64,000 nt of DNA from positions 62,001 to 126,000 of the forward strand of contig NIVC01000201.1 in the NCBI GenBank assembly GCA_002269645.1, written 5' to 3'. The position numbers and the translations under genes are program-made. Each line of letters begins with the position of its first letter. Position 1 is the stretch's first letter. This stretch comes from Macrostomum lignano (Eukaryota). The notes beneath the pieces were generated by a model. The model saw nothing but the letters and a program-made list of their open reading frames with translations, ran no database searches and was not told the DNA's origin. Of this stretch, positions 10,361 through 34,260 are shown piece after piece.

Positions 10361-13300
10361 TCAATCAACACACTGCTTCTTGTGGACCTTCCAGTGCTTC
10401 AGCTGGCAGTCTCTATTGCAGTAGAAGGCCTTCTTGCACCTGCTGCAGCGCTGCGAAGCGTCCCGCTTTCCACACGAGCTGCATCGGTCTCCGTGGCTCG
10501 ACTCACTTGGCAACTGGGAGTTCGGCGGGCTGGAATTCTCCAGATCATACAGCAGAAACACCTTCTGCAGCATTTTTTTCGGCGGGAAATCGTTTACGTG
10601 TTGAAAACAAGGCAGCCGCACCTCGGGACTCTCAGCCTGGAGTCCCCTCCGGAAATACTCCCTGGCCATTGCCTTGTCTTTCAAGCCCAAATACTCGAAC
10701 GCTATGCAATAGCAAGCCTCAGGAATGTGACGATCGTCTTTTTCGTTGGCAGAGATGTACTCTTCATACGCTTCAATGACTCTTCTGCGATCGCTCAGAC
10801 GCTGATGATGTCTGATGGCCGTAGCTTTGTCGTAAAGCCAATGGGGCTCCCAGTGTAGCTCTAACGCTCGCTCAAAGGCCCTTAAAGCGCTGATCCCATC
10901 GCCGTTGAATCCGTACATGTTGCCTAGCAAGTTGTAATATTCTGCGACATTAGGGTTCATATTAGTACAAGCCAGCGCCATGCGAAGGATTTCAGAAACA
11001 TTTGAAAGTTGTCGACCACTGTGGTAATGAATCATGACGAAATAAGCTTCAGAATCCTTAGGATTCTTTTCAAAGGCTGCAGTGGCCGCATCGAAGAGTT
11101 TCTTCCAGGTAAAAATGTCAATGACAAGAGGCTGCCAGGTTCTATCAGCAAATCGGTAGAGTCGAAAAGCTTCTGGTCCGTTGTTGCTATCTAAAGCAGA
11201 GCGCATTTGGTCCAAAAGATCGAAGCCGATGAAGTACTTTTGCGCGGTTTTTGACCCTTGCGCAGCCTTTTTTGCCATCAACTGCTCCGAAGTCAGCATA
11301 GTTGACATGTGATTGGATGCCGCAGGACGCAGCGACACACCCATCGTCTGCTTAAAATACTGGAAAATGTCCCGAAACGCTTCCTTCGACTTGTGGCTTG
11401 ATGCAAAGGATTCGACATACCTTGCATATCTTTCATCTTGACTAAGACCATCTTTAGAGAGGCCACGAGCAGCTTCAAATAACAAAATCTGAGAAGAAGC
11501 TTTCAACAGTTCTTCCACTTCTTTTTGGCGGTCTTTCTTGGACCTGAGCAGCCATCTGCGTGCTTCAGTGGGGTTATTTTCACAACCTTGTCCAAGACTC
11601 AGCATGCACCCAAAAAGCCACTGTGCCTCAGCATCACCGCTCTCGGCAGCCTTTCGAAGAAAGAAAGCCGCATCTTCTTCTTTTCCTAGCTGCAAAAGCA
11701 GCTTGCCCAGAGCAGGAAAGGCCCTTTCATGGTTCAGGTCCGAAGCCTTCCTCAAATACATTTCGGCCAGTTCAAAGTCCTGTTCGAATCCACCTTCTCC
11801 CTGCAAGTAGTTCTTTCCGAGGAGAAACAGCGCCTCTTTGTCGTTAGCCGCTGCCTTCTCTTCCACGATTTTTCTTGCTGAGTTCATGCGCTTCGCTTTC
11901 ATGGCTCCGCGCCGCATTTGCTGCTGTAGCGCCTCCAGAGCGCCTGGTAGGCCTTGGTCCGCAGCTGATTTGAGCAGTTCAACCGCCTTCTCAGAGTCGG
12001 CTGGTCCTCCCTCGCCTTCGATGAGCATCCCAGCTAATTTCAGCTGCGCCTCCGACTGTCCGAGGTCCGCGGCTTTCTGGAGCCACCATCGGGCGGAGGT
12101 CGGACTCCGCTCGCAGCCAGTTCCGTTGTAGAAGGCCAGCCCGAGGTTGCTCATGGCAGATGCGTAGCCGTGACGAGCGGACTTAAGAAACCATTTGAAT
12201 GCGAGCTTGTCATCCTTGTCCACGGCCATGCCGTTTCTGTAGGCCACGCCGAGGGCGTTCTCCGCCTCCGCCACGCCAATGTTGAGAAACACGTCGTCCA
12301 TGGCCGATAAGTACGGCTTCTGCTCGGCGGCTTGGAGGCACAGCTGAAAATGCTTTGCTGGATCCCGAGCCAGTCCTGCATTGCCGTCTTTGTACATGAT
12401 GGCCATGTTGTACAGACCCTGCGCACTGCCTTGCTTTGAAACGGACTCAAAGATCTCAAATGCCTTCTGCTCTTCGGTGATGTCGCCTCTGCCGGACTGC
12501 AGAATCTGGTGGGCCTTATCCAGCTCGCTGATGCTCTGCAAAATGGTGCTGTCTATGGGGCTCACTTCGTCAGGTGAAATTCCCGATGTACTCTCCACTT
12601 GGCAATCTCGCAGCTTCTTGTAGAGATCGCTGCTTTGGGTTTGGCTGCTTCCTTCTGCACCTACATCCTGCTGGCTGTCCATAACAAGAGCTGTGCAGAG
12701 CTGCTCCCGTAGAAGAAGGGTCTCGTCTGTAGAGTCGATTCTGAGACCAGTCTGACACGCATCCAAGGCTGGTTCATGTAGCCGCAGCTTATAGAGAGCT
12801 TCAGAAAGAATTCTGTAGAACTTAATCTGGCTGGGGTCCAGTCCAATCGCATCTTCAGCATCTTCTCGAGCAAGATCGAACTTTCGCAAATTTATTTCGC
12901 ACAGAGCTCGGTTTGAGTACAGAACAGCATTATTTGCATTGCTCTGAATTGCCTTTGTGTAGCAGGTCATCGCCTCCAACCATCTTCCTTTCTTATAATG
13001 CTCATTGCCTTCTGATTTGAGCTTCTCCCAGTCTCCGATTGAAACTCCAGCAAAGTTGGCGATTTCTTGCTGGCACTCACTTAATCCCATCAAGGACACG
13101 AGCTTTAATAAGCACTCGAGATCGTGCTCAGATCGGTGTACATCAAAGTCTTGGCGAGAATGTCGGTCACGGATTGCCTTTGCGCGCTCCAGAAGATGCT
13201 GCAGCAGCTGCCGATTTTGAGGTTCCAAGCCTGGGAAAGCCTCATCGACCTTGCCGGACATCATCTTCAGCAAATCGTTGAAATCCAGTTGGTTCTTTAA

Positions 13301-13405
13301 GCCAAAATGTCTCTGGAGCACCGAATGCATACCATCGCCTAGAAGGCTGACTGCAAACTGGATTTTTGCAGCTGCTTTGGCATTTGCCACATTTGCTGAT
13401 GCCAT
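10361..13405 (-). CDS. 1014-aa single-coding-exon protein: HEPN-like N-terminus, TPR repeats, Sel1-like repeats, C-terminal TPRs, MYND zinc finger (copy 1)
   Basis: Uninterrupted ORF with TPR motifs (KSEGNEHYKKGRWLEAMTCYTKAI; LYSNRALC), Sel1 motifs (AENALGVAYRNGMAVDKDDKLAFKWFLKSA; AMSNLGLAFYNGTG) and MYND CSSCGKRDASQRCSRCKKAFYCNRDCQLKHWKVHKKQC. A splice acceptor TTCTAG lies 16 nt upstream of the ATG in copy 1 and 14 nt upstream in copy 2. Confidence 0.95.
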   Translation of the reverse strand: MASANVANAKAAAKIQFAVSLLGDGMHSVLQRHFGLKNQLDFNDLLKMMSGKVDEAFPGLEPQNRQLLQHLLERAKAIRDRHSRQDFDVHRSEHDLECLLKLVSLMGLSECQQEIANFAGVSIGDWEKLKSEGNEHYKKGRWLEAMTCYTKAIQSNANNAVLYSNRALCEINLRKFDLAREDAEDAIGLDPSQIKFYRILSEALYKLRLHEPALDACQTGLRIDSTDETLLLREQLCTALVMDSQQDVGAEGSSQTQSSDLYKKLRDCQVESTSGISPDEVSPIDSTILQSISELDKAHQILQSGRGDITEEQKAFEIFESVSKQGSAQGLYNMAIMYKDGNAGLARDPAKHFQLCLQAAEQKPYLSAMDDVFLNIGVAEAENALGVAYRNGMAVDKDDKLAFKWFLKSARHGYASAMSNLGLAFYNGTGCERSPTSARWWLQKAADLGQSEAQLKLAGMLIEGEGGPADSEKAVELLKSAADQGLPGALEALQQQMRRGAMKAKRMNSARKIVEEKAAANDKEALFLLGKNYLQGEGGFEQDFELAEMYLRKASDLNHERAFPALGKLLLQLGKEEDAAFFLRKAAESGDAEAQWLFGCMLSLGQGCENNPTEARRWLLRSKKDRQKEVEELLKASSQILLFEAARGLSKDGLSQDERYARYVESFASSHKSKEAFRDIFQYFKQTMGVSLRPAASNHMSTMLTSEQLMAKKAAQGSKTAQKYFIGFDLLDQMRSALDSNNGPEAFRLYRFADRTWQPLVIDIFTWKKLFDAATAAFEKNPKDSEAYFVMIHYHSGRQLSNVSEILRMALACTNMNPNVAEYYNLLGNMYGFNGDGISALRAFERALELHWEPHWLYDKATAIRHHQRLSDRRRVIEAYEEYISANEKDDRHIPEACYCIAFEYLGLKDKAMAREYFRRGLQAESPEVRLPCFQHVNDFPPKKMLQKVFLLYDLENSSPPNSQLPSESSHGDRCSSCGKRDASQRCSRCKKAFYCNRDCQLKHWKVHKKQCVD

Positions 13406-15230
13406 GTGAGAGGCACCTCAGCTAGAATGTGAAATTTGATAGGGACATGAAATTTTAATGTAATGATTGTTGTTCTAATATTTGTGCAACACAAACTTAA
13501 TTGTAAAATACTTGGATGAAGACTATACATAAATTTTCTTTTTTTTTGTTAAATGGGCCTTATGTGTGATACCCTATTGTTAGACAGAACACATTAAAAA
13601 TAAAGATATTTATCTCATTTATATTGATAAGTTACTTTATTTCTTTCACTCTTTATTTAGCAAGCTATATTATCTAAGCTAAATATTTCACTTTTAATCA
13701 ATTGGCATATAGTAGTTGATTAAAGGTAGCTACTGGCTACTATAAAAACATATAGGCAAAATGATGCTATGTTAAAGCTAGCACAAAATACTAGTACCTT
13801 TAAATCTAGAACTTTAATTACAAAAACATTTCTAAGACATTACTAGTATATGTTATATAAACATATAATATCATTTGACTTCTACTTCTATAAAAAACTA
13901 TTGTATTGTATGATTAGTAAGTTATATAATTAATTGCTTAAGTTATTCTTTAAAATGCTAAAAAATATTTTTTATAACACATAATAATTAATAAACTACT
14001 GTGATAGCCAGGCCTACATGCAGTGAGAAAGCAATACATTCACACTCAAACCCACTAATTATTAAGGCTATTATTAAATAGTACCTAAGGCTATAGATTT
14101 AGAATTAAGGCAAATAATGTTGGTAATAGTCAAAGCTATAACAATGACACTACAAATTATTTTAAATTATAAAGGCTTTTTCAAATTGTCTAATGTATAA
14201 ACATCAGGCAGTCAAGTCAAGTTATTTACTTGATAGGCCTACTACATGGGATACTACTAGTATGCATATATAAATATTGATATATATATGAAATACTAAT
14301 AATTTTAATTAGTTGTATGCCAAATATCAAATAAGTTTATTGTACTAAGCAAAATATTCAAGTTTCTACCCTGAATTGAATGCAGTGTTCAACTTGGTCA
14401 AGTGGCATTTGCATTGCATTATAAGGCCCATAGCATAGCTTTGGCTAATAAGATAATAAATAGGGTTATAGCATAAATTAAAGTTACATTGCCACTTGTT
14501 GACCCCTGGCTATGGGATGGAAAACTTTAAAATATTGCTGAGTGTATATGCCAAGCTAGCTAGCCAACAGAACAGACAAAAAGCAACGAATCAAAAGAGT
14601 ATATATATATGCATCGAATAATTTATGCTAAAAATGATAGATATAGGGGCCTATGTACGCAATGTATATGTAATGTATGTATTCTATTTCAATTTAAACA
14701 GCTAGGCGTAAGAGTAAGACAACGCTGTTTGATTTAGAGCAATGCAGTTTTGGATCGCAAATACGACGTATATCCCGTTGGAGCTGTTAAGGCTAAGGGT
14801 AAATTCAGTTAGACAAAACGAAAACGAAAAATTATAATGGAAAAATCGAAATGTTAGATTTATGAAGCATTGACCAAAGTATTCATCAAAAAAGTCACAA
14901 GTATTTCCTAAAGGCAAAGAAGAATTTTAATGCAATAGATATTAAAGAATCGTTTCCCTTGGTTGTGTCAAATTTAACCTAAAAAACTTTGTTAAAGTTT
15001 GCAAGCAGAAAGCAGCCAAAGTTTTAAAGAAGGTCAAATTGTAATGTAATTGCAACAAATATATTATTAGCGGAAGAGCCCTGGCTAGGGGCTGAAACGC
15101 TAGCAACATATCAAAGTAAAAATTAAAAAGTTGATAGAAAGCTACGAATAATTAAAATTAATTTTGTACGCATTTTTACGTGTAACGTATGTGATGTAAC
15201 TTTTCTATAAATTTTCTATGAATGTATGCA

Positions 15231-17522
15231 CAGCAAGGACGGGTGCACGACAATTGACTGCCACAATTTGACTGCCACAATTTGACTGCGGTCAATTTGA
15301 CTGCGGACAATTTGACTGCCGAGCAATTTGACTGCCGACAAAATGACTGCGGACAAAATGACTGCGGACAAAATGACTGCCGACAATTTGACTGCGGACA
15401 AAATGACTGCCGACAAAATGACTGCGGACAAAATGACTGCCGACAAAATGACTGCCGACAATTTGACTGCCGACAAAATGACTGCGGCAATTTGACTGCC
15501 GACAAAATGACAGCGGCAAAGCTTGCTAGGCGCATTCTCGTTATGCAAAAGAGGAGAGAGAGATGAGAGAAAATTTGAAAAAGAAGACAGGGGAAAGGAG
15601 AGATTGTAGAGATGAGAGAGATGAAAGGAGAGATGAGATGAGAGATGAAGGCGGAGAGAGCAGAGTGCAGAGAGACGAGAGAAGTGAATAAAGGGAGAGA
15701 GTATAGAAGAGGGAAAAGAAGAGGACTAAGGAAAGAGAGGAGTCAGAAGAGGGGAAAGAGTGAAGTGACAGGTACACAGGAGTGAAGAGTAAGATGAGAG
15801 GGGGATGAGAGAGCAAAGATGAGAGTCAGAGAGTGAACACGATATAGGAGAGGAGAGAGGAGAGCGCAGAGAGAGAAGAGAAAAGACAAGAGAGGGAGAG
15901 AGTATAGAAGAAAGAATAGAAGAAAAGAAAAGGGAAGAAAGGAGAAAGGAAAGAGAGGAGTACAGAGGAGAGAGGTGAGAGAACATTACCAGTATAAGAG
16001 AGTAAAGATGACAGATGAGAGAGGGGAGATGAGAGAGCAGAGACGAGAGAGAAGAGACGAGAGAGAAGTGAGAAAACAGAAGAGAAGATAGAAGGTTCAA
16101 AGGATGCAAGGAACATAGGGATCGAGAGGCAGAAGTAGAGGCCAGAGTTTTTCTGACATTCTGCGCTGCACCCCAGCCAACAATATCAATAGTTTGCCTC
16201 CAATGCTAATTTTACACGAATGTAATCTATGTTATGTTTAACTCTAATAATAAAAGTTTTTGCTTGAGTTTAACTTCAGATTTTAGAATATATGCAAAAT
16301 AGTTCCTAAGATTGGAACTCCCATTTCCCACTGTTCAAAATCCACGGGTTTCAACAGCTGTTACAGCTTGTTGTATAAAAGTTATGTGTTCTGTTCTGCA
16401 TCATTCTAGCTCGTAAATACAATATTTCACTACATGCATAGACTTAAAAGGGTTGACAGAGTGCTAAACTTTAGGAGCATCATTTTTCCGGCAGTCATTT
16501 CGCTGGCAGTCAAATTGCTCGGCAGTCAAATTGCCGCAGTCATTTTGCTGGCAGTCAAATTGCCGCAGTCATATTGTCGGCAGTCAAATTGCCGCAGTCA
16601 TATTGTCGGCAGTCAATTGCCGCAGTCATATTGTCGGCAGTCAAATTGCCGCAGTCATTTTGCTGGCAGTCAAATTGCCGCAGTCATATTGTCGGCAGTC
16701 AAATTGCCGCAGTCAAATTGTGGCAGTCAAATTGTGGCAGTCAAATTGCCGCAGTCAAATTGACCGCAGTCAAATTGTGGCAGTCAAATTGTGGCAGTCA
16801 ATTGTCGTAGACCCAGCAAGGACGACTCAAGTAGAAGGACGGGAAACCTCGTTTCTTAGAAAATTTTTGAAGGCACTTTTTCCCGAAAAAATACACTGCG
16901 GAGATAGGAAATTTTCATTTTTCAGCACAAAAATTGCTATAACTTTTGATAGGAGGCAGATCCAGTGTTCATCTTTTGATATGTTGTGCCTTTTTTATTG
17001 TTTTATCGATACTTATAAAGCTTTCCGTTCAGAAGATTAGGATTCTATGTTAATTTTTTTTTCTACGTATATTTTCATGTGTCTTGTGCTTGAAATTATA
17101 CATTAATTAGAATGCCACGGCTTGGCTCTTTGGTTTTATGAGTCTATTTTATCCTTCTTACCTGACTGTATAGCAAATAGTCGTAACATAGATGATAAAA
17201 TAGATTCCTAAAACCAAATATTAGAGCTGTGTCATGCATTTTTGTGATTTTTAGATACAGGAAATATACGTAGAATAAAAAATTAACATAGAAATCTAAT
17301 TTTCTGAACGAAAAGCTTTATAAATATCGATAAAACAATAAAAAAGGCACAACATATCAAAAGATGAACACTGGATCTGCCTCCTATCAAAAGTTATAGC
17401 AATTTTTGTGCTGAAAAAATGAAAACTTCCTATCTCCGTAGTGTATTTTTTCGGGAAAAGTGCCTTCAGAAATTTTCTAAGAAACGAGGTTTCCCGTCCT
17501 TCTACTTGAGTCGTCCTTGCTG
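15231..17522. mobile_element. MITE of about 710 bp with about 260-bp terminal inverted repeats, interrupted by a foldback element
   Basis: 16815-17075 is the reverse complement of about 17258-17522 (CAGCAAGGACGACTCAAGTAGAAGGACGGG...). The first 10 bp of the left TIR lie at 15231-15240. CA flanks both ends (possible 2-bp TSD). Confidence 0.85.
15241..16814. mobile_element. Non-autonomous Mutator/foldback-type transposon
   Basis: 9-bp TSD AGCAAGGAC (15232-15240 and 16815-16823). TIRs start GGGT(GC/CT)ACGACAATTGACTGCC and are built of 15-bp tandem units (15245-15515 and inverted 16487-16805). The interior is purine-rich low complexity plus AT-rich DNA, with no transposase. Confidence 0.9.
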
Positions 17523-18318: not shown

Positions 18319-18456
18319 GAAACCAAAAATTACATCGAGCAGGAATGACTGTAGTGTAGTTGATGCGAAATCTTCTGCTTGCCAAAAAAATTAAAATAAT
18401 CGAAAATCAACGCGTTTGGTGTGCAGGATTCTCCTCTTCCTGTTATTTTTCGCTTA

Positions 18457-21400
18457 AACTGAAGATTTGGGATCGATGCTTTGCTCAAACTGAGGATCTG
18501 GGAGATGCTTTGCTCAAACTGAGGATCTGGGAGATGCTTTGCTCAAACTGAGGATCTGGGAGATGCTTTGCTCAAACTGAGGATCTGGGAGATGCTTTGC
18601 CCAAACTGAGGATCTAGGAGATGCTTTGCTCAAACTGAGGATCTGGGAGATGCTTTGCTCAAACTGAGGATCTGGGAGATGCTTTGCTCAAACTGAGGAT
18701 CTGGGAGATGCTTTGCTCAAACTGAGGATCTGGGAGATGCTTTGCTCAAACTGAGGATCTGGGAGATGCTTTGCTCAAACTGAGGATCTGGGAGATGCTT
18801 TGCTCAAACTGAGGATCTAAGAGATGCTTTGCTCAAACTGGGGATCTGGGAGATGCTTTGAACTCAAACTGAGGATCTAGGAGATGCTTTGAACTCAAAC
18901 TGGGGATCTGGGAGATGCTTTGCTCAAACTTGGATTTGGGAGATGCTTTGAACTCAAACTGGGGATCTGGGAGATGCTTTGCTCAAACTGAGGATCTGGG
19001 AGATGCTTTGCTCAAACTGGGGATCTAGGAGATGCTTTGCTCAAACTGAGGATCTAGGAGATGCTTTGAACTCAAACTGAGGATCTGGGAGATGCTTTGA
19101 ACTCAAACTGAGGATCTGGGAGATGCTTTGAACTCAAACTGGGGATCTGGGAGATGCTTTGCTCAAACTTGGATTTGGGAGATGCTTTGCTCAAACTGGG
19201 GATCTGGGAGATGCTTTGCTCAAACTGAGGATCTAGGAGATGCTTTGAACTCAAACTGGGGATCTGGGAGATGTTTTACTCTCAAACTGAGGATCTGGGA
19301 GATGCTTTGCTCAAACTGAGGATCTGGGAGATGCTTTGCTCAAACTGGGGATCTGGGAGATGCTTTGCTCAAACTGGGGATCTGAGAGATGCTTTGAACT
19401 CAAACTGAGGATCTGGGAGATGCTTTGCTCAAACTTGGATTTGGGAGATGCTTTGCTCAAACTGAGGATCTGGGAGATGCTTTGCTCAAACTGAGGATCT
19501 GGGAGATGCTTTGCTCAAACTGAGGATCTAGGAGATGCTTTGAACTCAAACTGAGGGTCTGGGAGATGCTTTGCTCAAACTGAGGATCTGGGAGATGCTT
19601 TGCTCAAACTGAGGATCTGGGAGATGCTTTGCTCAAACTGAGGATCTGGGAGATGCTTTGCTCAAACTGAGGATCTGGGAGATGCTTTGCTCAAACTGAG
19701 GATCTAGGAGATGCTTTGAACTCAAACTGGGGATCTGGGAGATGCTTTGCTCAAACTTGGATTTGGGAGATGCTTTGCTCAAACTGGGGATCTGGGAGAT
19801 GCTTTGCTCAAACTGAGGATCTGGGAGATGCTTTGCTCAAACTGAGGATCTAGGAGATGCTTTGAACTCAAACTGGGGATCTGGGAGATGCTTTGCTCAA
19901 ACTTGGATTTGGGAGATGCTTTGCTCAAACTGGGGATCTGGGAGATGCTTTGCTCAAACTGAGGATCTAGGAGATGCTTTGAACTCAAACTGAGGATCTG
20001 GGAGATGCTTTGCTCAAACTTGGATTTGGGAGATGCTTTGAACTCAAACTGGGGATCTGGGAGATGCTTTGCTCAAACTTGGATTTGGGAGATGCTTTGC
20101 TCAAACTGGGGATCTGGGAGATGCTTTGCTCAAACTGAGGATCTAGGAGATGCTTTGAACTCAAACTGGGGATCTGGGAGATGCTTTGCTCAAACTTGGA
20201 TTTGGGAGATGCTTTGCTCAAACTGGGGATCTGGGAGATGCTTTGCTCAAACTTGGATTTGGGAGATGCTTTGAACTCAAACTGGGGATCTGGGAGATGC
20301 TTTGCTCAAACTGAGGATCTGGGAGATGCTTTGCTCAAACTGAGGATCTAGGAGATGCTTTGCTCAAACTGAGGATCTAGGAGATGCTTTGAACTCAAAC
20401 TGAGGATCTGGGAGATGCTTTGCTCAAACTGAGGATCTGGGAGACGCTTTGAACTCAAACTGAGGATCTGGGAGATGCTTTGAACTCAAACTGGGGATCT
20501 GGGAGATGCTTTGCTCAAACTTGGATTTGGGAGATGCTTTGCTCAAACTGGGGATCTGGGAGATGCTTTGCTCAAACTGAGGATCTGGGAGATGCTTTGC
20601 TCAAACTGAGGATCTGGGAGATGCTTTGCTCAAACTGAGGATCTAGGAGATGCTTTGCTCAAACTGAGGATCTAGGAGATGCTTTGAACTCAAACTGAGG
20701 ATCTGGGAGATGCTTTGCTCAAACTGAGGATCTGGGAGATGCTTTGAACTCAAACTGAGGATCTGGGAGATGCTTTGAACTCAAACTGGGGATCTGGGAG
20801 ATGCTTTGCTCAAACTTGGATTTGGGAGATGCTTTGCTCAAACTGGGGATCTGGGAGATGCTTTGCTCAAACTGAGGATCTAGGAGATGCTTTGAACTCA
20901 AACTGAGGATCTGGGAGATGCTTTGAACTCAAACTGAGGATCTGGGAGATGCTTTGAACTCAAACTGGGGATCTGGGAGATGCTTTGCTCAAACTTGGAT
21001 TTGGGAGATGCTTTGCTCAAACTGGGGATCTGGGAGATGCTTTGCTCAAACTGAGGATCTAGGAGATGCTTTGAACTCAAACTGGGGATCTGGGAGATGT
21101 TTTACTCTCAAACTGAGGATCTGGGAGATGCTTTGCTCAAACTGAGGATCTGGGAGATGCTTTGCTCAAACTGGGGATCTGGGAGATGCTTTGCTCAAAC
21201 TGGGGATCTGAGAGATGCTTTGAACTCAAACTGAGGATCTGGGAGATGCTTTGCTCAAACTTGGATTTGGGAGATGCTTTGCTCAAACTGAGGATCTGGG
21301 AGATGCTTTGCTCAAACTGAGGATCTGGGAGATGCTTTGCTCAAACTGAGGATCTAGGAGATGCTTTGAACTCAAACTGAGGATCTGGGAGATGCTTTGC

Positions 21401-24400
21401 TCAAACTGAGGATCTGGGAGATGCTTTGCTCAAACTGAGGATCTGGGAGATGCTTTGCTCAAACTGAGGATCTGGGAGATGCTTTGCTCAAACTGAGGAT
21501 CTGGGAGATGCTTTGCTCAAACTGAGGATCTAGGAGATGCTTTGAACTCAAACTGGGGATCTGGGAGATGCTTTGCTCAAACTTGGATTTGGGAGATGCT
21601 TTGCTCAAACTGGGGATCTGGGAGATGCTTTGCTCAAACTGAGGATCTGGGAGATGCTTTGCTCAAACTGAGGATCTAGGAGATGCTTTGAACTCAAACT
21701 GGGGATCTGGGAGATGCTTTGCTCAAACTTGGATTTGGGAGATGCTTTGCTCAAACTGGGGATCTGGGAGATGCTTTGCTCAAACTGAGGATCTAGGAGA
21801 TGCTTTGAACTCAAACTGAGGATCTGGGAGATGCTTTGCTCAAACTTGGATTTGGGAGATGCTTTGAACTCAAACTGGGGATCTGGGAGATGCTTTGCTC
21901 AAACTTGGATTTGGGAGATGCTTTGCTCAAACTGGGGATCTGGGAGATGCTTTGCTCAAACTGAGGATCTAGGAGATGCTTTGAACTCAAACTGGGGATC
22001 TGGGAGATGCTTTGCTCAAACTTGGATTTGGGAGATGCTTTGCTCAAACTGGGGATCTGGGAGATGCTTTGCTCAAACTTGGATTTGGGAGATGCTTTGA
22101 ACTCAAACTGGGGATCTGGGAGATGCTTTGCTCAAACTTGGATTTGGGAGATGCTTTGCTCAAACTGGGGATCTGGGAGATGCTTTGCTCAAACTTGGAT
22201 TTGGGAGATGCTTTGAACTCAAACTGGGATCTGGGAGATGCTTTGCTCAAACTGAGGATCTGGGAGATGCTTTGCTCAAACTGAGGATCTAGGAGATGCT
22301 TTGCTCAAACTGAGGATCTAGGAGATGCTTTGAACTCAAACTGAGGATCTGGGAGATGCTTTGCTCAAACTGAGGATCTGGGAGACGCTTTGAACTCAAA
22401 CTGAGGATCTGGGAGATGCTTTGAACTCAAACTGGGATCTGGGAGATGCTTTGCTCAAACTTGGATTTGGGAGATGCTTTGCTCAAACTGGGGATCTGGG
22501 AGATGCTTTGCTCAAACTGAGGATCTGGGAGATGCTTTGCTCAAACTGAGGATCTGGGAGATGCTTTGCTCAAACTGAGGATCTAGGAGATGCTTTGCTC
22601 AAACTGAGGATCTAGGAGATGCTTTGAACTCAAACTGAGGATCTGGGAGATGCTTTGCTCAAACTGAGGATCTGGGAGATGCTTTGAACTCAAACTGAGG
22701 ATCTGGGAGATGCTTTGAACTCAAACTGGGGATCTGGGAGATGCTTTGCTCAAACTTGGATTTGGGAGATGCTTTGCTCAAACTGGGGATCTGGGAGATG
22801 CTTTGCTCAAACTGAGGATCTAGGAGATGCTTTGAACTCAAACTGAGGATCTGGGAGATGCTTTGAACTCAAACTGAGGATCTGGGAGATGCTTTGAACT
22901 CAAACTGGGGATCTGGGAGATGCTTTGCTCAAACTTGGATTTGGGAGATGCTTTGCTCAAACTGGGGATCTGGGAGATGCTTTGCTCAAACTGAGGATCT
23001 AGGAGATGCTTTGAACTCAAACTGGGGATCTGGGAGATGTTTTACTCTCAAACTGAGGATCTGGGAGATGCTTTGCTCAAACTGAGGATCTGGGAGATGC
23101 TTTGCTCAAACTGGGGATCTGAGAGATGCTTTGAACTCAAACTGAGGATCTGGGAGATGCTTTGCTCAAACTTGGATTTGGGAGATGCTTTGCTCAAACT
23201 GAGGATCTGGGAGATGCTTTGCTCAAACTGAGGATCTGGGAGATGCTTTGCTCAAACTGAGGATCTAGGAGATGCTTTGAACTCAAACTGAGGATCTGGG
23301 AGATGCTTTGCTCAAACTGAGGATCTGGGAGATGCTTTGCTCAAACTGAGGATCTGGGAGATGCTTTGCTCAAACTGAGGATCTGGGAGATGCTTTGCTC
23401 AAACTGAGGATCTGGGAGATGCTTTGCTCAAACTGAGGATCTAGGAGATGCTTTGAACTCAAACTGGGATCTGGGAGATGCTTTGCTCAAACTTGGATTT
23501 GGGAGATGCTTTGCTCAAACTGGGGATCTGGGAGATGCTTTGCTCAAACTGAGGATCTGGGAGATGCTTTGCTCAAACTGAGGATCTAGGAGATGCTTTG
23601 AACTCAAACTGGGGATCTGGGAGATGCTTTGCTCAAACTTGGATTTGGGAGATGCTTTGAACTCAAACTGGGGATCTGGGAGATGCTTTGCTCAAACTTG
23701 GATTTGGGAGATGCTTTGCTCAAACTGGGGATCTGGGAGATGCTTTGCTCAAACTGAGGATCTAGGAGATGCTTTGAACTCAAACTGGGGATCTGGGAGA
23801 TGCTTTGCTCAAACTTGGATTTGGGAGATGCTTTGCTCAAACTGGGGATCTGGGAGATGCTTTGCTCAAACTTGGATTTGGGAGATGCTTTGAACTCAAA
23901 CTGAGGATCTGGGAGATGCTTTGCTCAAACTTGGATTTGGGAGATGCTTTGCTCAAACTGGGGATCTGGGAGATGCTTTGCTCAAACTTGGATTTGGGAG
24001 ATGCTTTGAACTCAAACTGGGGATCTGGGAGATGCTTTGCTCAAACTGAGGATCTGGGAGATGCTTTGCTCAAACTGAGGATCTAGGAGATGCTTTGCTC
24101 AAACTGAGGATCTAGGAGATGCTTTGAACTCAAACTGAGGATCTGGGAGATGCTTTGCTCAAACTGAGGATCTGGGAGACGCTTTGAACTCAAACTGAGG
24201 ATCTGGGAGATGCTTTGAACTCAAACTGGGGATCTGGGAGATGCTTTGCTCAAACTGAGGATCTAGGAGATGCTTTGCTCAAACTGAGGATCTAGGAGAT
24301 GCTTTGAACTCAAACTGAGGATCTGGGAGATGCTTTGCTCAAACTGAGGATCTGGGAGATGCTTTGAACTCAAACTGAGGATCTGGGAGATGCTTTGAAC

Positions 24401-26086
24401 TCAAACTGGGGATCTGGGAGATGCTTTGCTCAAACTTGGATTTGGGAGATGCTTTGCTCAAACTGGGGATCTGGGAGATGCTTTGCTCAAACTGAGGATC
24501 TAGGAGATGCTTTGAACTCAAACTGAGGATCTGGGAGATGCTTTGAACTCAAACTGAGGATCTGGGAGATGCTTTGAACTCCAACTGGGGATCTGGGAGA
24601 TGCTTTGCTCAAACTGGGGATCTAGGAGATGCTTTGCTCAAACTGGGGATCTGGGAGATGCTTTGCTCAAACTGAGGATCTAGGAGATGCTTTGAACTCA
24701 AACTGGGGATCTGGGAGATGTTTTACTCTCAAACTGAGGATCTGGGAGATGCTTTGCTCAAACTGAGGATCTGGGAGATGCTTTGCTCAAACTGGGGATC
24801 TGAGAGATGCTTTGAACTCAAACTGAGGATCTGGGAGATGCTTTGCTCAAACTTGGATTTGGGAGATGCTTTGCTCAAACTGAGGATCTGGGAGATGCTT
24901 TGCTCAAACTGAGGATCTGGGAGATGCTTTGCTCAAACTGAGGATCTAGGAGATGCTTTGAACTCAAACTGAGGATCTGGGAGATGCTTTGCTCAAACTG
25001 AGGATCTGGGAGATGCTTTGCTCAAACTGAGGATCTGGGAGATGCTTTGCTCAAACTGAGGATCTGGGAGATGCTTTGCTCAAACTGAGGATCTGGGAGA
25101 TGCTTTGCTCAAACTGAGGATCTAGGAGATGCTTTGAACTCAAACTGGGGATCTGGGAGATGCTTTGCTCAAACTTGGATTTGGGAGATGCTTTGCTCAA
25201 ACTGGGGATCTGGGAGATGCTTTGCTCAAACTGAGGATCTGGGAGATGCTTTGCTCAAACTGAGGATCTAGGAGATGCTTTGAACTCAAACTGGGGATCT
25301 GGGAGATGCTTTGCTCAAACTTGGATTTGGGAGATGCTTTGCTCAAACTGGGGATCTGGGAGATGCTTTGCTCAAACTGAGGATCTAGGAGATGCTTTGA
25401 ACTCAAACTGAGGATCTGGGAGATGCTTTGCTCAAACTTGGATTTGGGAGATGCTTTGAACTCAAACTGGGGATCTGGGAGATGCTTTGCTCAAACTTGG
25501 ATTTGGGAGATGCTTTGCTCAAACTGAGGATCTAGGAGATGCTTTGAACTCAAACTGGGGATCTGGGAGATGCTTTGCTCAAACTTGGATTTGGGAGATG
25601 CTTTGCTCAAACTGGGGATCTGGGAGATGCTTTGCTCAAACTTGGATTTGGGAGATGCTTTGAACTCAAACTGGGGATCTGGGAGATGCTTTGCTCAAAC
25701 TTGGATTTGGGAGATGCTTTGCTCAAACTGGGGATCTGGGAGATGCTTTGCTCAAACTGAGGATCTGGGAGATGCTTTGCTCAAACTGAGGATCTGGGAG
25801 ATGCTTTGCTCAAACTGAGGATCTGGGAGATGCTTTGCTCAAACTGAGGATCTGGGAGATGCTTTGCTCAAACTGAGGATCTGGGAGATGCTTTGAACTC
25901 AAACTGAGGATCTGGGAGATGCTTTGAACTCAAACTGAGGATCTGGGAGATGCTTTGCTCAAACTGAGGATCTAGGAGATGCTTTGAACTCAAACTGGGG
26001 ATCTGGGAGATGCTTTGCTCAAACTTGGATTTGGGAGATGCTTTGCTCAAACTGGGGATCTGGGAGATGCTTTGCTCAAACTGAGG
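18457..26086. repeat. 7.6-kb satellite, 29-31 bp unit (AAACTGAGGATCTGGGAGATGCTTTGCTC), with higher-order structure
   Basis: Tandem units with recurrent variants; the rare variant ATGTTTTACTCTC occurs at 19271, 21097, 23037 and 24718. Confidence 0.98.
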
Positions 26087-26350: not shown

Positions 26351-27686
26351 CTAGAAGAAGCCGTTGATCAGGTCTGCCAGGTCGGCAATCTTGTTGAAGT
26401 GAGCGGCCTGGCAAGCGGCTTTGAGCTCGTCAGGGTACAGGTGGTGAACCCTGGGCGGCATGCTCTGGTAGCGCAGCCACTCGCACAGCTCAGCAACAAC
26501 CTGACGCTTCTCTGGCTCGGACGACAGAGCCGACAGCCGCTCGAAGGAGGTCTTGATGTCGGCATCTGTCTGCTCCTCGCGGTAGTCCATGCCCATGCGC
26601 TCGTAGCGGTCATCGACTCGCCGGCACTCGCGATTGTGCACCGCCTGGGTTGATTGATTGGTTTATTTGACTGGCTTTGGTTTATTAATATAAAAGAAGC
26701 CAGATAATAAGCATGCATAAATCAAGCAGTGTTTTCATTTATTAGCGGCTTATAGAAGTGCAGCAGTATACAGACACAAACAAACGAATTGAAACAAACC
26801 AATAAGTCTAGTTCTCAAAGCTTCAGACCTTCCTCTGCTTGAACCAGTGCAGCGCGAGCTCCTCGAACTCAGCATTCTGGAGCAGTTTGCTCAGCACCAG
26901 CTTCAGGGTTGACTCGTGCTTCTCCTCGCGCGATTTAGCGGCAGGTCCGGCAGAGGCCGACATCCTTGATGGCAGCTGATCTGCAGAATGCCATGCATAA
27001 TCCAAGTAGAATCATTATTCGCAAGAAAGGAGGGCCACGCCCCCGGCCCCTCCCTTTCCTTTCCTCTCAGCTCTCCTTTCCTTTCCTCTCCTCTTCTCTC
27101 CTCTCCTCTCCTCTCCTCTCCTCTCCTCTCCTCTCCTCTCCTCTCCATTCCTCTCCTCTCCTCTCCTTTCCTCTCCTCTCCTCTCCTTTCCTCTCCTCTC
27201 CTTTCCTCTCCTCTCCTCTCCTTTCCTCTCCTCTCCTCTCCTCTCCTCTCCTCTCCATTCCTCTCCTCTCCTCTCCTTTCCTCTCCTCTCCTCTCCTTTC
27301 CTCTCCTCTCCTTTCCTCTCCTCTCCTCTCCTCTCCTCTCCTTTCCTCTCCTCTCCTTTCCTTTCCTCTCCTCTCCTCTCCTCTCCTCTCTTTTCCTTTC
27401 CTCTCCTCTCCTCTCCTTTCCTCTCCTCTCCTTTCCTCTCCTCTCCTCTCCTTTCCTCTCCTCTCCTCTCCTTTCCTCTCCTCTCCTCTCCTTTCCTCTC
27501 CTCTCCTCTCCTTTCCTCTCCTCTCCTCTCCTCTCCTTTCCTTTCCTTTCCTCTCCTCTCCTTTCCTTTCCTTTCCTCTCATCTCCTTTCCTTTCCTCTC
27601 CTCTCCTTTCCTCTCCTCACCTCTCCTTTCCTCTCCTCTCCTCTTTAGCAGGCTGGCAGATGTGCTCCTGTATGACATGACTCACT
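26351..27686 (-). CDS. 3' exons of an unknown spliced gene with a possible death-fold-like C-terminus (copy 1)
   Basis: Phase-compatible GT-AG exons 26829-26980 and 26351-26644, plus an upstream donor at 27685/27686. The joined peptide reads ..HESTLKLVLSKLLQNAEFEELALHWFKQRKAVHNRECRRVDDRYERMG..ELCEWLRYQ..DELKAACQAAHFNKIADL. The start was not located. Confidence 0.65.
27048..27645. repeat. (CCTCT/CCTTT)n homopyrimidine microsatellite (intronic)
   Basis: Pure C/T pentamer array. Confidence 0.98.
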
Positions 27687-29010: not shown

Positions 29011-29013
29011 TTA

Positions 29014-29195: not shown

Positions 29196-29419
29196 CTGAG
29201 TTGACATCCGGGTAAATGTTAGTTAAAATGAAAAAATATCAATAAAGAGCGCAACACTGTAAACTGATTCGTGTAGCAGAGCCAAATGCAGTGACATGCA
29301 TAATTGAGGTACGCACATCAGGATAAATGTATTTACACTTCACGCAAAAATGCAAATAAATATCCATACCAAAGGCGATTCTGCTTATTCTAAGCATAGC
29401 ACACACCAAGCTAGTTTAA

Positions 29420-29670
29420 GAAGCTTGGATTTTGAAAAAGTATATAATTGCTATCTTTAGAAAACGAAATTTTGGGAAAGCCTATAGTTTGTATTTTCAG
29501 AAACCTGGATTTGGGGAAAGCCTACAGTTGCTATTTTTAGAAACCTGGATCTTGGTGAAGTCTACAGTTGCTATTTTTAGAAACCTGGATTTTGGAGAAG
29601 CCTACAGTTGCTATTTTTAGAAACCTGGATCTTGGAGAAGCCTATAGTTGCTATTTTTAGAAACCTGGAT
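29420..29670. repeat. 40-bp minisatellite (CTACAGTTGCTATTTTTAGAAACCTGGATTTTGGAGAAGC)
   Basis: About 6 tandem units; longer in the block B copy. Confidence 0.9.
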
Positions 29671-31215
29671 ATTTTCTGGAGATTGACAAAAAGGTTAACC
29701 AGTTTCTAGGATTAACTAACCTCCACCTTTCAAAATTCTTTCTGCTCTACGATTCAAAAGCTCAAGAAGGCTGGACTTACTCGTATCTGTAGCAAGTGTT
29801 CAGTACCAATTTATAAGCACAAGTTTGAAAGAAAGATTCTTTCATTCGCAATGATCGTTATGGAACAAGGATTCCAGCATCATGGAATATTTTTCATTAC
29901 CTCACATTCTCTTTTGCGCCCATTCTAGTAGGGAGGGACTAACCTACTTTCTATATAGATAAGCTTGCAAGAATTGACTTAAAAATGCGTGCAAAATTTA
30001 GCTAAGAAATTATTCGTAGCTGTCTATCAAAACCCGATAAGAAAAGCTTATGTATCAGTTCAGTTTGTGATGTCATCACTAAATAAACCTTGTCACAAAT
30101 TCGTACCTTTAAAAAAATTTGGCCGTTAAATTTCTACTTGTAAACTTTAACAAAGTTTTTAGGTTAGGTTGGACATGACTAAAAAAACAATTTTTTAATA
30201 TATTTTGCAACAACATTTTTCTTCGCCCTTAGGAAATACATATGATTTCTCTTATGAATACTTTGGTCAATACTTCATACTATTCTACATTTCGATTTTT
30301 CCATTACAATTTTTCGTTTTCGTTTTTTTGTTGTCTAACTGAATTTACAAATACTTAGCCTTAACAGCTCCTACAAAATATAAGTCGCATTTGCGATCCG
30401 AAACTGTATGGCTCTAAATCAAACAGCTTTGTCTTACTCTTAGGTCTAGCTGTTAAAATTGAAATAGCATAAGTACATCACATATACATTCACATACATA
30501 TTTATTGTTTTACCATAGGCCTAGTAGTATTAAATTATTGGATGCATATACGCTCATATTTTGTCTTTCGATTTGTTGCTTCTTCCGTTGCCTAGCTAGC
30601 TTGGCATATACACTCAGCAGCATTTTAAAGTTTTCCATAACCATAGCCAGTGGTCAACAATAGGCTTGCCATGGCATTATTATTCTTCAATTAAATTCCA
30701 AAGTCTACATAAGTAACTAACTATACCAATCAGTGTTAGCGGCCTAATTCTATTATTGCCAAAAAATATACTATTAGGGCCTACCAAATGCTCTTTGTTA
30801 AAATAGGCCATAGTTCTTCAAAACATAGTCTAAGTCTATAGAAACAGAGAATAGAAATAGAAATAAAAACTATCTAAAAAGTAAAAAATCTAAAAAAAGT
30901 TTGAGAAATAGAAAAAATGATTTTTTAGGTCCTTTAGTTGTAGGCAACAAAATGTTTTACTTATATTTTTAATACATAATTGATTGTTTAAGTTATTTTA
31001 AGAATGTTATTTTATGCATATTGTATATTGCATTCTGTGTACATATGTTCACAATGGGCTATCATATAAGGCCAATTGGTCGAAAAAGAAAATTTATGTA
31101 TAAAGTCGGATCCATTTTACAATTCAGTTTTTGTTCCAGGAATACTAGAACAACAATTAATACATTGAAATTTCATGTCCCCATCAAATTTCACATTCTA
31201 GCATAGGCGCCTCAA

Positions 31216-34200
31216 ATGGAATCAGCAAATGTGGCAAATGCCAAAGCAGCTGCAAAAATCCAGTTTGCAGTCAGCCTGCTTGGCGATGGTCTGCATTCGG
31301 TGCTCCACAGACATTTCGGCTTGAAGAACCAACTTGATTTCAATGAGTCGCTGAAGATGATGTCTGGAAAGGTCAATGAGTCTTTCCCAGACTTGGAACC
31401 TCAAAATCGGCAGCTGCTGCAGCGTCTTTTGGAGCGCGCGAAGGCAATCCGTGACCGACATTCTCGCCAAGATTTTGATGTGTACCGATCTGAGCACGAT
31501 CTCGAGTGCTTATTAAAGCTCGCATCTTTAATGGGATTGAGCGAAAGCCAGCAAGAGATCGCCAACTTTGCTGGAGTTTCAATCGGAGACTGGGAGAAGC
31601 TCAAGTCGGAAGGCAATGGGCATTATAAGAAAGGAAGATGGTTGGAGGCAATGACCTGCTACACCAAGGCAATTCAAAGTAATACAAATGTTGCTGTTTT
31701 GTACTTAAACCGAGCTCTGTGCGAAATCAATTTGCGTAGGTTCGATCTTGCTCGAGAAGATGCTGAAGATGCGATTGGACTTGACCCCAGTCAGAGTAAG
31801 TTCTACAGAATTCTTTCTGAAGCTCTCTATAAGCTGCGATTGCACCAGCCAGCCTTGGATGCGTGCCAGACTGGCCTCAGAATCGACTCTACAGACGAGA
31901 CCCTTCTTCTACGGGAGCAACTTTGCACAGCTCTTGTTTTGGACAGCCAGCAGGATGTAGGTGCAGAAGGAAGCAGCCAAACCCAGAGCAGCGATCTCTA
32001 CAAGAAGCTGCGAGATTGCCAAGTGGAGAGTACATCCGACATTTCACCTGATGAGGTGCACCCCATAGACAGCACCATTTTGCAGAGCATCAGCGAGCTA
32101 GACAAGGCCCACCAGATTCTGCAGTCCGGCAGAGGCGACATCAACGAAGAGCAGAAGGCGTTTGAGATCTTTGAGTCCGTTGCAAAGCAAGGCAGTGCGC
32201 AGGGTCTGTACAACATGGCCATCATGTACAAAGACGGCAATGCAGGACTGGCTCGGGATCCAGCAAAGCATTTCCAGCTGTGCCTCCAAGCCGCCGAGCA
32301 GAAGCCGTACTTATCGGCCATGGACGACGTGTTTCTCAACATTGGCGTGGCGGAGGCGGAGAACGCCCTCGGCGTGGCCTACAGAGACGGCATGGCCGTG
32401 GACAAGGATGACAAGCTCGCATTCAAATGGTTTCTTAAGTCCGCTCGTCACGGCTACGCATCAGCCATGAGCAACCTCGGGCTGGCCTTCTACAACGGAG
32501 CTGGCTGCGAGCGGAGCCCGACCTCCGCCCGATGGTGGCTCCAGAAAGCCGCGGACCTCGGACAGTCGGAGGCGCAGCTGAAATTAGCTGGGATGCTCAT
32601 CGAAGGCGAGGGAGGACCAGCCGACTCTGAGAAGGCGGTTGAACTGCTCAAATCAGCTGCGGACCAAGGCCTACCAGGTGCTCTGGAGGCTCTGCAGCAG
32701 CAAATGCGGCGCGGAGCCATGAAAGCGAAGCGCATGAACTCAGCAAGAAAAATCGTGGAAGAGAAGGCAGCGGCTAACGACAAAGAGGCGCTGTTTCTCC
32801 TCGGAAAGAACTACTTGCAGGGAGAAGGTGGATTCGAGCAGGACTTTGAACTGGCCGAAATGTATTTGAGGAAGGCTTCGGACCTGAACCATGAAAGGGC
32901 CTTTCCTGCTGTTGGCAAGCTGCTTTTGCAGCTAGGAAAAGAAAAAGATGCGGCTTTCTTTCTTCGAAAGGCTGCCGAGAGCGGTGATGCTGAGGCACAG
33001 TGGCTTTTTGGGTGCATGCTGAGTCTTGGACAAGGTTGTGAAAATAACCCCACTGAAGCTCGTAGATGGCTGCTCAGGTCCAAAAAAGACAGCCAAAAAG
33101 AAGTGGAAGAACTGTTGAAAGCTTCTTCTCAGATTTTGTTATTTGAAGCTGCTCGTGGCCTATCTAAAAATGGTCTTAGTCAAGATGAGAGATTTGCAAG
33201 GTATGTTGAATCCTTTGCATCAAGCCACAAGTCGAAGGAAGCGTTTCGCGACCTTTTTCAGTATTTTAAGCAGACGATGGGTGTGTCGCTGCACCCTGCG
33301 GGATCCAATCACATGTCAACTATGCGAACTTCGGAGCAGTTGATGGCAAAAAAGGCTGCGCAAGGGTCAAAAACCGCGCAAAAGTACTTCATCGGCTTCG
33401 ATCTTTTGGACCAAATGCGCTCTGCTTTAGATAACAACAACGGACCAGAAGCTTTTCGACTCTACCGACTAGCTGATAGAACCTGGCAGCCTCTTATTAT
33501 TTATAATTCTACCTGGAAGAAACTCTTTGATGCGGCCACTGCAGCCTTTGAAAAAAATCCTAAGGATTCTGAAGCTTATTTTGTAATAATTAATTATTGC
33601 AGTGTTAAAAAACTTTCAAATGTTGCTGAACTCCTTCGAATGGCGCTGGCTTGTACCAATCTGAACCCTAATGTGGCTGACTATTACAACTATCTAGGCA
33701 ACATGTACGGATTCAACGGAGATGGAATCAGCGCTTTAAGGGCCTTTGAGCGAGCTTTAGAGCTAGACTGGGAGCCCCATTGGCTTTACGACAAAGCGTC
33801 GGCTGTCAGGCATCATCAGCGGCTGAGCGATCGCAGAAGAGTCATCGAAGCGTATGAAGAGTACATCTCTGCCAACGAAAAGGACGATCGTCACATTCCT
33901 GAGGCTTGCTATTGCATAGCGTTCGAGTATTTGGGCTTTGAAGACATGACAATGGCCAGGGAGTATTTCCGGAGGGGACTCCAGGCTGAGAGTCCCGAGG
34001 TGCGGCTGCCGTGCTTTGAACCCGTTAACGATTGCCCACCGAAGGAAATGCTGCAGAAGGTGTTTCTGCTGTATGATCTTGAGAATTCCGGCCCGCTGAA
34101 CTCCCAGCTGCCAAGCGAATCGAGCAGCGGAGACCGGTGCAGTTCCTGTGGAAAGCGGAACGCATCGCAGCGATGCAGCAGGTGCAAGAAGGCTTTCTAC

Positions 34201-34260
34201 TGCGATAGAGACTGCCAGCTGAAGCACTGGAAGGTCCACAAGAAGCAGTGTGTTAATTGA
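31216..34260 (+). CDS. 1014-aa HEPN-like/TPR/Sel1/MYND protein (copy 2)
   Basis: Uninterrupted ORF, colinear with copy 1, same length and no indels; roughly 92-93% aa identity by eye. Confidence 0.95.
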   Translation: MESANVANAKAAAKIQFAVSLLGDGLHSVLHRHFGLKNQLDFNESLKMMSGKVNESFPDLEPQNRQLLQRLLERAKAIRDRHSRQDFDVYRSEHDLECLLKLASLMGLSESQQEIANFAGVSIGDWEKLKSEGNGHYKKGRWLEAMTCYTKAIQSNTNVAVLYLNRALCEINLRRFDLAREDAEDAIGLDPSQSKFYRILSEALYKLRLHQPALDACQTGLRIDSTDETLLLREQLCTALVLDSQQDVGAEGSSQTQSSDLYKKLRDCQVESTSDISPDEVHPIDSTILQSISELDKAHQILQSGRGDINEEQKAFEIFESVAKQGSAQGLYNMAIMYKDGNAGLARDPAKHFQLCLQAAEQKPYLSAMDDVFLNIGVAEAENALGVAYRDGMAVDKDDKLAFKWFLKSARHGYASAMSNLGLAFYNGAGCERSPTSARWWLQKAADLGQSEAQLKLAGMLIEGEGGPADSEKAVELLKSAADQGLPGALEALQQQMRRGAMKAKRMNSARKIVEEKAAANDKEALFLLGKNYLQGEGGFEQDFELAEMYLRKASDLNHERAFPAVGKLLLQLGKEKDAAFFLRKAAESGDAEAQWLFGCMLSLGQGCENNPTEARRWLLRSKKDSQKEVEELLKASSQILLFEAARGLSKNGLSQDERFARYVESFASSHKSKEAFRDLFQYFKQTMGVSLHPAGSNHMSTMRTSEQLMAKKAAQGSKTAQKYFIGFDLLDQMRSALDNNNGPEAFRLYRLADRTWQPLIIYNSTWKKLFDAATAAFEKNPKDSEAYFVIINYCSVKKLSNVAELLRMALACTNLNPNVADYYNYLGNMYGFNGDGISALRAFERALELDWEPHWLYDKASAVRHHQRLSDRRRVIEAYEEYISANEKDDRHIPEACYCIAFEYLGFEDMTMAREYFRRGLQAESPEVRLPCFEPVNDCPPKEMLQKVFLLYDLENSGPLNSQLPSESSSGDRCSSCGKRNASQRCSRCKKAFYCDRDCQLKHWKVHKKQCVN

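Follow-up and report, generated by a model that had tools for sequence, protein, structure and literature searches.

The DNA examined here is a 64,000-nucleotide (nt) stretch of the flatworm Macrostomum lignano (NCBI GenBank assembly GCA_002269645.1, contig NIVC01000201.1, positions 62,001 to 126,000 of the forward strand; hereafter the window, numbered from its first letter), and the subject of the analysis is a pair of genes that it carries in opposite orientation. The two open reading frames (ORFs), at 10361–13405 on the minus strand (copy 1) and 31216–34260 on the plus strand (copy 2), each run for 1014 codons from ATG to stop, exactly as a preliminary description of the window had reported in listing two intact frames of 1014 amino acids (aa) on opposite strands. 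Their products are 93% identical with no gaps, and the genes lie in an inverted repeat (10298–13410 and 31211–34323) whose arms of 3113 nt share 94% DNA identity and stand 17.8 kb apart, the copies being arranged head-to-head with transcription diverging, each away from the other. An open frame of such length cannot be of chance origin, and because homologues outside Macrostomum have equivalent starts and ends, the 1014-aa ORF is taken as the entire coding sequence. The M. lignano sequences PAA73298.1, PAA73299.1, and PAA79807.1, the first two with neighbouring accession numbers on a single contig, fall into the window protein's cluster at 90% identity, and all are labelled only "hypothetical protein" or "MYND-type domain-containing protein"; a literature search on the gene and protein identifiers and the assembly identifier returned no paper naming the window genes. 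Also a member of this cluster is A0A1I8HRC9, a UniRef model of 5778 aa annotated as "Reverse transcriptase", which looks like an older gene model fusing the window gene with a neighbouring retroelement. The coding sequences and their parts are listed below by window position.

10361–13405, minus strand: copy 1, complete coding sequence, single ORF (HEPN-like, TPR, six Sel1 repeats, TPR, MYND)
31216–34260, plus strand: copy 2, complete coding sequence, single ORF, 93% amino acid identity to copy 1
13052–13393, minus strand: copy 1, probable Swt1-like HEPN homology region, aa 5–118 (profile score 87.9 bits, E = 6e-26; AlphaFold2 confidence, pLDDT, 90)
31228–31569, plus strand: copy 2, probable Swt1-like HEPN homology region, aa 5–118 (profile score 94.1 bits, E = 7e-28)
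13151–13171, minus strand: copy 1, degenerate Rx4H site, aa 79–85, R-D-R-H-S-R-Q (canonical R-N-x-x-[S/A]-H-Q)
31450–31470, plus strand: copy 2, degenerate Rx4H site, aa 79–85, R-D-R-H-S-R-Q
12686–13030, minus strand: copy 1, three-repeat TPR module like those of Hop, CHIP and PP5, aa 126–240
31591–31935, plus strand: copy 2, Hop-like TPR module, aa 126–240
11486–12508, minus strand: copy 1, Sel1-repeat core, aa ~300–640, including a gene-conversion tract
32113–33135, plus strand: copy 2, Sel1-repeat core, aa ~300–640, including the gene-conversion tract
10601–11065, minus strand: copy 1, second TPR block, aa ~781–935
33556–34020, plus strand: copy 2, second TPR block, aa ~781–935
10370–10483, minus strand: copy 1, MYND zinc finger, aa 975–1012, eight ligands
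34138–34251, plus strand: copy 2, MYND zinc finger, aa 975–1012

The N-terminal domain is, with high confidence, a homologue of the Swt1-like HEPN domain (PF18731), a reading that draws on profile comparisons across the family of related proteins. The N-termini of three members exceed the PF18731 gathering score of 27.5 bits (P0016, 40.4; P0144, 40.2; P0020, 33.2; best E = 4e-10), P0207 reaches 27.0 bits over profile positions 3–114, seven more of the members tested score 14.8–22.2 bits with the register unchanged, and 11 of the 17 aligned N-termini match the profile at E ≤ 10. A hidden Markov model (HMM) of the N-domain, made from 12 non-Macrostomum sequences with Macrostomum left out, recovered aa 5–118 of copy 1 at 87.9 bits (E = 6e-26) and of copy 2 at 94.1 bits (E = 7e-28), where the best of 2000 shuffled controls reached 11.2 bits. 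The window domain is accordingly placed in PF18731 transitively, through its family members, and the HEPN reading that the preliminary description had proposed for aa 1–120 gains support from both sets of scores; the N-terminal string quoted there mixes residues of copies 1 and 2. In a PADLOC scan of the family N-domains, the sole recurrent matches were to CRISPR-associated CARF-HEPN models (E = 2e-4 to 1e-3). The AlphaFold2 (AF2) model of window aa 1–126 has a mean local confidence (pLDDT) of 90.1 and a global score (pTM) of 0.83, with helices at 2–34, 42–56, 62–83, 89–105, and 109–119 in the order expected for the HEPN fold, an up-down bundle of four helices with an insert separating helices 2 and 3. 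In this model the motif at aa 79–84 closes the third long helix (62–83) and runs into the next loop, and the invariant Asp41 sits just ahead of helix 2, which match the positions given for the HEPN Rx4-6H motif and conserved acidic residue by Anantharaman et al. 2013 (PMC3710099).

The active site of this domain is kept in most of the family and degenerate in the window. Of the 22 sequences that span the site in the family alignment, 15 retain the canonical R-[N/H]-x-x-[S/A]-H-Q (e.g., RNRYSHQ, RNNYSHQ, RNLVAHQ, and RNSVSHQ), whereas both window copies read R-D-R-H-S-R-Q at aa 79–85, in register, such that the catalytic His is replaced by Arg and the Asn by Asp and neither copy carries an Rx4-6H motif. 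The preliminary description had remarked on a degenerate Rx4H (RDRHSR) in both copies, and this proved correct. RDRHSR (aa 79–84) recurs in another three M. lignano members of the 90% cluster, and a sequencing error in the motif was ruled out on its identity in five sequences. The closest paralogue, P0002, reads T-S-R-L-S-T-Q, with Arg and His both gone, and the distant member P0018 has lost the site separately and independently. In a rough neighbour-joining tree the Macrostomum sequences group into a single clade that splits in two, one branch with the canonical motif RNRYSHQ (P0003, P0004, P0005, and the copies at L026) and one degenerate (P0002 and the window cluster). Several HEPN families, Swt1 included, are without Rx4-6H, a motif required for RNase activity and not for membership in the fold (PMC3710099).

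Selection on the degenerate domain was gauged from the two copies, which differ by 101 synonymous and 75 non-synonymous changes (synonymous divergence, dS, 0.171; non-synonymous divergence, dN, 0.032; dN/dS 0.19); the HEPN part taken separately has 19 synonymous and 12 non-synonymous changes (dN/dS 0.15). All of the family-invariant residues are retained in the window copies (A9, L22, D41, F42, Q85, E97, and L99), which, together with the low dN/dS, argues that the HEPN domain is maintained by purifying selection although its catalytic His is lost. The pattern in the window clade is probably that of a pseudo-enzyme, i.e., a conserved, non-catalytic pseudo-RNase, and the label "sensor-effector" previously attached to the protein is doubtful in its "effector" half for this clade.

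The TPR, Sel1, and MYND assignments made earlier were upheld by Pfam in both copies. Matches to TPR_1, TPR_2, and TPR_8 fall into two blocks (aa ~131–230 and ~817–925); the six Sel1 repeats (PF08238) score 124.9 and 120.7 bits against a gathering score of 30.7, and Sel1 proteins in the PDB match the window protein at E = 7.5e-62; and zf-MYND (PF01753) at aa 975–1012 scores 40.5 and 41.1 bits against a gathering score of 22.7, with all eight zinc ligands of the C4-C2HC arrangement present (C975, C978, C987, C990, C996, C1000, H1008, and C1012). The MYND finger is not known from outside the eukaryotes. The best-conserved segment of the family is aa 126–240, at 64–82% identity even to the rotifer and environmental members, and this conservation argues for a conserved ligand. 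The segment aligns without gaps to TPR2B (domain E = 4.5e-16) and TPR1 of human Hop, and its other top PDB matches, to RPAP3, SPAG1, SGTA, CHIP, and PP5, are likewise to TPRs that bind Hsp70/Hsp90. The five carboxylate-clamp residues, reportedly defined by the Hop-peptide structures of Scheufler and co-workers in 2000, are K8, N12, N43, K73, and R77 in Hop TPR1; four of the five positions are matched in the window protein (K130, N134, N165, and K195), and at the fifth Hop R77 aligns with I199 while the window Arg stands at 198, an offset of one residue that recurs family-wide (K-[FY]-Y-R).

The family is small and patchily distributed. An exhaustive comparison of the N-domain profile HMM with 1.84 billion representative proteins returned 85 at E ≤ 1e-3, and nine of the ten family matches that were scanned have the architecture HEPN-TPR-Sel1(-MYND) or are fragments of it, the tenth (P0191) having no Pfam family. 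With so few matches and so scattered a spread, the gene is clearly no housekeeping ortholog conserved in single copy. Full-length homologues of the same architecture were found among M. lignano paralogues, in the bdelloid rotifers Rotaria and Didymodactylos, in the oomycete Aphanomyces stellatus, and on further genome and metagenome contigs. Searches with the TPR signature segment met no relatives among 185,579 genomes of prokaryotic species or among the viral contigs of IMG/VR, and in metagenomes they retrieved 20 loci, mostly short; a second homologue search with the N-terminal profile yielded fragments only. The M. lignano members are the window pair, P0002, P0003, P0004, and a tandem array on NIVC01000528.1 (L026, 9965–22025) of three single ORFs on the same strand, all with RNRYSHQ, two of which are full-length and the third of which stops early at 886 aa. 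The other M. lignano paralogue ORFs examined are uninterrupted and in tandem arrays, and the non-Macrostomum members are likewise long uninterrupted ORFs on eukaryote-like contigs, some in tandem; a few metagenome loci suggest introns. The public gene model for P0005 merges exons of two members of the NIVC01000528.1 array. In other organisms, at L004 (744–3024, GCA_025491035.1) a family member adjoins a TPR-protein-kinase gene followed by a Sel1 ORF, and at L005 (2–3136) a family member has a second member in tandem. The environmental protein P0207 (1455 aa) carries between its second TPR block and MYND an extra Cys/His-rich stretch, which by eye resembles a TRAF-type zinc finger.

The homology of the two window copies extends beyond their coding sequences. 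When gaps are allowed, the 136 nt next to the ATG align at 84% identity and blocks further upstream at ~80%, for an upstream homology of about 1.1–1.6 kb, and about 1.5 kb of the downstream flanks is homologous at 79–95% identity in blocks with indels, giving a duplicated unit of roughly 8883–15011 and 30131–35765 with the following flanks.

8883–10360, minus strand: copy 1, 3′ flank, homologous at ~79–95% in blocks to its counterpart at copy 2
34261–35765, plus strand: copy 2, 3′ flank, homologous to its counterpart at copy 1
13406–15011, minus strand: copy 1, 5′ flank, blocks homologous to the copy 2 5′ flank, 84% over 136 nt and ~80% beyond
30131–31215, plus strand: copy 2, 5′ flank, homologous to its counterpart at copy 1

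Since homology continues into the flanks at either end, the pair arose by an inverted segmental duplication at the DNA level and neither copy is a retrocopy of the other; this exclusion concerns the copies mutually and not the founder of the family. No poly(A) remnant was seen 3′ of the window copies. Synonymous divergence between the copies is uneven, with a dS of 0.054 in aa 301–640 versus 0.15–0.34 elsewhere. At the P0002 locus (L027, 10001–13054, on M. lignano contig NIVC01002548.1), a tract of ~750 nt (nt 901–1650) has 93–98% DNA identity to the window copies, whereas the rest of the gene has 47–80% identity and the flanks are unrelated; the MYND finger of P0002 is frameshifted. The tract is a discrete ectopic gene conversion, by which the Sel1 cores of three or more loci are kept alike.

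Several points weigh against taking the window pair as a non-catalytic HEPN protein. The Pfam scan of aa 1–125 of the window protein gave no direct match to HEPN (PF18731), and a Foldseek search of the AF2 model against the PDB recovered no HEPN structure (best E = 0.14), a null outcome for the fold test that the preliminary description had named as able to refute its reading. The Foldseek result was equally blank for the control, the N-domain of the Pfam-certified HEPN_Swt1 member P0016 (pLDDT 87.3), which likewise recovered no HEPN (best E = 0.62); Foldseek is therefore powerless for this HEPN subfamily and cannot refute the assignment. A PDB sequence-profile search with the N-domain yielded noise only, an NCBIfam scan of it gave no matches, and the exhaustive profile search met no other HEPN architecture at E ≤ 1e-3. 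Together with the blank structural searches, these results would suit a family-specific helical domain that is not HEPN and has a coincidental likeness to the motif, but we hold this to be improbable in view of the three members above the curated PF18731 gathering score with many more matches in register, the independent PADLOC matches to CARF-HEPN, and the agreement of helix topology and motif position with the published description of HEPN (PMC3710099). As to activity, the inactivity of the window copies is predicted from the motif alone, some HEPN families use an alternative His (PMC3710099), and His82, two residues upstream of the lost His, is new in the window clade, with Tyr, Val, or Ile elsewhere. 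The copies could then still be RNases with a rearranged site formed by His82 or Arg84 with Arg79, Asp41, and Gln85, a possibility to which the retention of Arg79, Gln85, and all the family-invariant residues at a dN/dS of 0.15 also lends some weight; we nonetheless give it a low probability, since R79 to H82 is an Rx2H spacing outside Rx4-6H, helix residue 82 would by the AF2 model face a side other than that of 84, and the sister P0002 is without Arg and His, suggesting a relaxed need for catalysis in the branch. Finally, the one-residue offset of the clamp Arg makes EEVD binding by the TPR module uncertain.

That the ORFs are decaying duplicates, i.e., functionless pseudogenes in the making, might be supposed from the missing catalytic motif and from the state of P0002, with its frameshifted MYND and neither Arg nor His, but neither 1014-aa frame is broken, the zinc ligands and the invariant residues have been retained, and another assembly holds three more intact copies or alleles; the pseudogene reading was rejected on the dN/dS of 0.19, and we regard decay as very improbable. 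The preliminary description had argued from the lack of coding introns to retroposition or a horizontal origin. This was not borne out by the homologous flanks, the tandem single-ORF paralogues, and the TRM13-like gene nearby, itself a single ORF, and nothing found indicates retroposition or recent horizontal origin; a recent bacterial or viral source was rejected, as no donors were found. A broader version, in which the pair or its Macrostomum founder is a retrocopy or a recent horizontal acquisition, could draw on the intronless coding sequence, on the patchy spread over flatworm, bdelloid rotifers, oomycete, and environmental eukaryotes, and on the nesting of the oomycete sequence among animal and unknown sequences in the rough tree. 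It is unlikely in our estimation: the flanks are homologous on both sides without a poly(A) remnant, the Macrostomum sequences group as a single clade whose single-ORF genes occupy three or more loci or arrays, the neighbouring TRM13-like gene is likewise one long ORF, the searches of prokaryotic genomes and IMG/VR met no relatives, and some environmental members seem to bear introns. With these alternatives weighed, we moderately favour the view that the window pair encodes a non-catalytic, pseudo-RNase HEPN on a TPR/Sel1/MYND scaffold, with a binding or regulatory rather than an RNA-cutting role.

Compared with known systems, all of the parts of the protein are familiar and its function is inferred; what is new is the HEPN-TPR-Sel1-MYND architecture and the degenerate yet conserved subclade. 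The Swt1-like fusions surveyed by Anantharaman et al. (PMC3710099) comprise PIN, AAA+, dsRBD/NACHT/DEATH, aegerolysin, and others, and TPR fusions are listed there for other HEPN families (DZIP3, C6orf70, and LA2681); HEPN-TPR-Sel1-MYND is absent from that survey and from the later literature searched, in keeping with the unfamiliar architecture noted at the outset. Swt1-like HEPN domains (PF18731; the Abi2/Swt1 clade of PMC3710099) resemble the window family in their R-N-x-x-[S/A]-H-Q site with the motif placed where helix 3 ends, and in including active and inactive versions and lineage-specific expansions (e.g., in Daphnia). Swt1 itself, whose own HEPN is listed as inactive (PMC3710099), has a PIN domain and a HEPN dyad, whereas the window protein has a single HEPN-like domain; on the absence of PIN and dyad in Pfam, the possibility that the window protein is a Swt1 ortholog was ruled out. 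The nearest functional precedent is sacsin, in which a HEPN domain likewise sits on a large scaffold linked to Hsp70/Hsp90 and the motif survives in certain lineages but not in others; in human sacsin the motif is lost and a non-catalytic RNA-binding role has been proposed, the role of the HEPN having been called enigmatic in 2013 (PMC3710099). Sacsin differs in that its HEPN belongs to the HEPN-T family and is C-terminal where that of the window protein is N-terminal, it has no Sel1 or MYND, and its chaperone link is through DnaJ/HATPase modules where that of the window protein would be a TPR clamp. DZIP3/hRUL138 and C6orf70 (ERMARD) are also eukaryotic HEPN proteins fused to TPR and zinc-binding adaptors, DZIP3 with lineage-specific expansions in invertebrates (PMC3710099), but they belong to other HEPN families and have RING, NACHT, or DEATH partners instead of Sel1/MYND. 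To the clamp TPRs of Hop/STIP1, CHIP, PP5, RPAP3, and SGTA the likeness is that of aa 126–240, gapless to Hop with four of five clamp positions. Sel1 arrays like that of the window protein are elsewhere joined to caspase, CHAT, TIR, trypsin, or kinase domains, and this "effector plus repeat array" layout is common in conflict systems; such proteins share only the Sel1/TPR array with the window protein, none having this HEPN subfamily or MYND. Links between HEPN and Sel1 are listed for DUF4145 fusions and AbiU2 operons (PMC3710099).

HEPN domains are RNase effectors in many defence and stress systems, including Cas13, Csm6, RNase L, Ire1, and abortive-infection genes, and HEPN RNases are generally dimeric with a composite active site. 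Since most family members keep R-N-x-x-[S/A]-H-Q, the ancestral protein would have been an RNase, presumably a HEPN endoRNase that needs no metal and is attached to a solenoid scaffold able to bind peptides. In the window clade the HEPN-like domain would still fold and its catalysis would have been exchanged, most simply for RNA binding or dimerisation-based regulation; the first TPR module would putatively dock onto a C-terminal acidic peptide like the EEVD tail of Hsp70/Hsp90, and partner proteins may be recruited by the Sel1 repeats, second TPR block, and MYND finger. We infer the loss of RNase activity, the RNA binding, the chaperone docking, and any role in stress or defence, the last being suggested circumstantially by lineage-specific expansion, tandem arrays, patchy distribution, and architecture. 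Composite sites in HEPN dimers mean that a dead paralogue could modulate active ones. At its most speculative, and in our judgement doubtfully, the family may be a eukaryotic module for stress or defence that has not been described before, a dimeric HEPN RNase docked on chaperones, whose dead window pair would heterodimerise with the active paralogues of the tandem array and restrain or redirect them, its patchy spread among microscopic animals and oomycetes reflecting transfer from eukaryote to eukaryote; if true, the heterodimers would parallel, in eukaryotes, the pairing of a toxin and a pseudo-toxin that regulates it. In this family a Swt1-like HEPN, of a superfamily whose roles in animals are mostly obscure, is physically joined with a putative TPR clamp of the Hop type, a solenoid of Sel1 repeats, and a MYND adaptor. 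Because a single genome contrasts paralogues with an intact motif and paralogues with a dead motif under selection, in a species in which RNA interference and transgenesis work, the role of a non-catalytic HEPN becomes directly testable. The P0002 comparison further shows how, in a multigene family, conversion between genes can keep the repeat core uniform as both ends diverge.

The rest of the window contains other genes and several repeat tracts. An uninterrupted ORF of 556 aa at 58376–60046 on the minus strand, the TRM13-like gene, has zf-U11-48K and TRM13 tRNA-methyltransferase domains (E = 1.6e-26); as it is of a conserved, housekeeping type and also a single ORF, intron-free coding is not peculiar to the HEPN gene here. 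On the plus strand, an exon-like ORF at 41818–42435 encodes a fibrinogen C-terminal globular domain (E = 9e-27), and 39070–39564 covers part of a TNP/THAP9-like transposase RNase H domain (E = 1.5e-17). A 7.6-kb satellite (18452–26086) of ~259 copies of the 29-nt unit GCTCAAACTGAGGATCTGGGAGATGCTTT at 91% matches, with a strong G-over-C skew, takes up much of the spacer that separates the gene copies. Just upstream of copy 1 are minisatellites (15252–15520, 16480–16807, and 16918–17418) with 15/30-nt and 14/29/57-nt units, whose motifs are related and mutually reverse-complementary, plus an inverted repeat of 157 nt (96%). Tracts of (CCTCT/CCTTT)n lie at 27049–27644 and ~44170–48100, the second ~4 kb long and nearly pure C/T on the plus strand with a GC skew of about −1, and long spurious ORFs arise in them; the same leader of ~90 nt stands ahead of both, and the tracts therefore look like copies of one repeat-bearing element.

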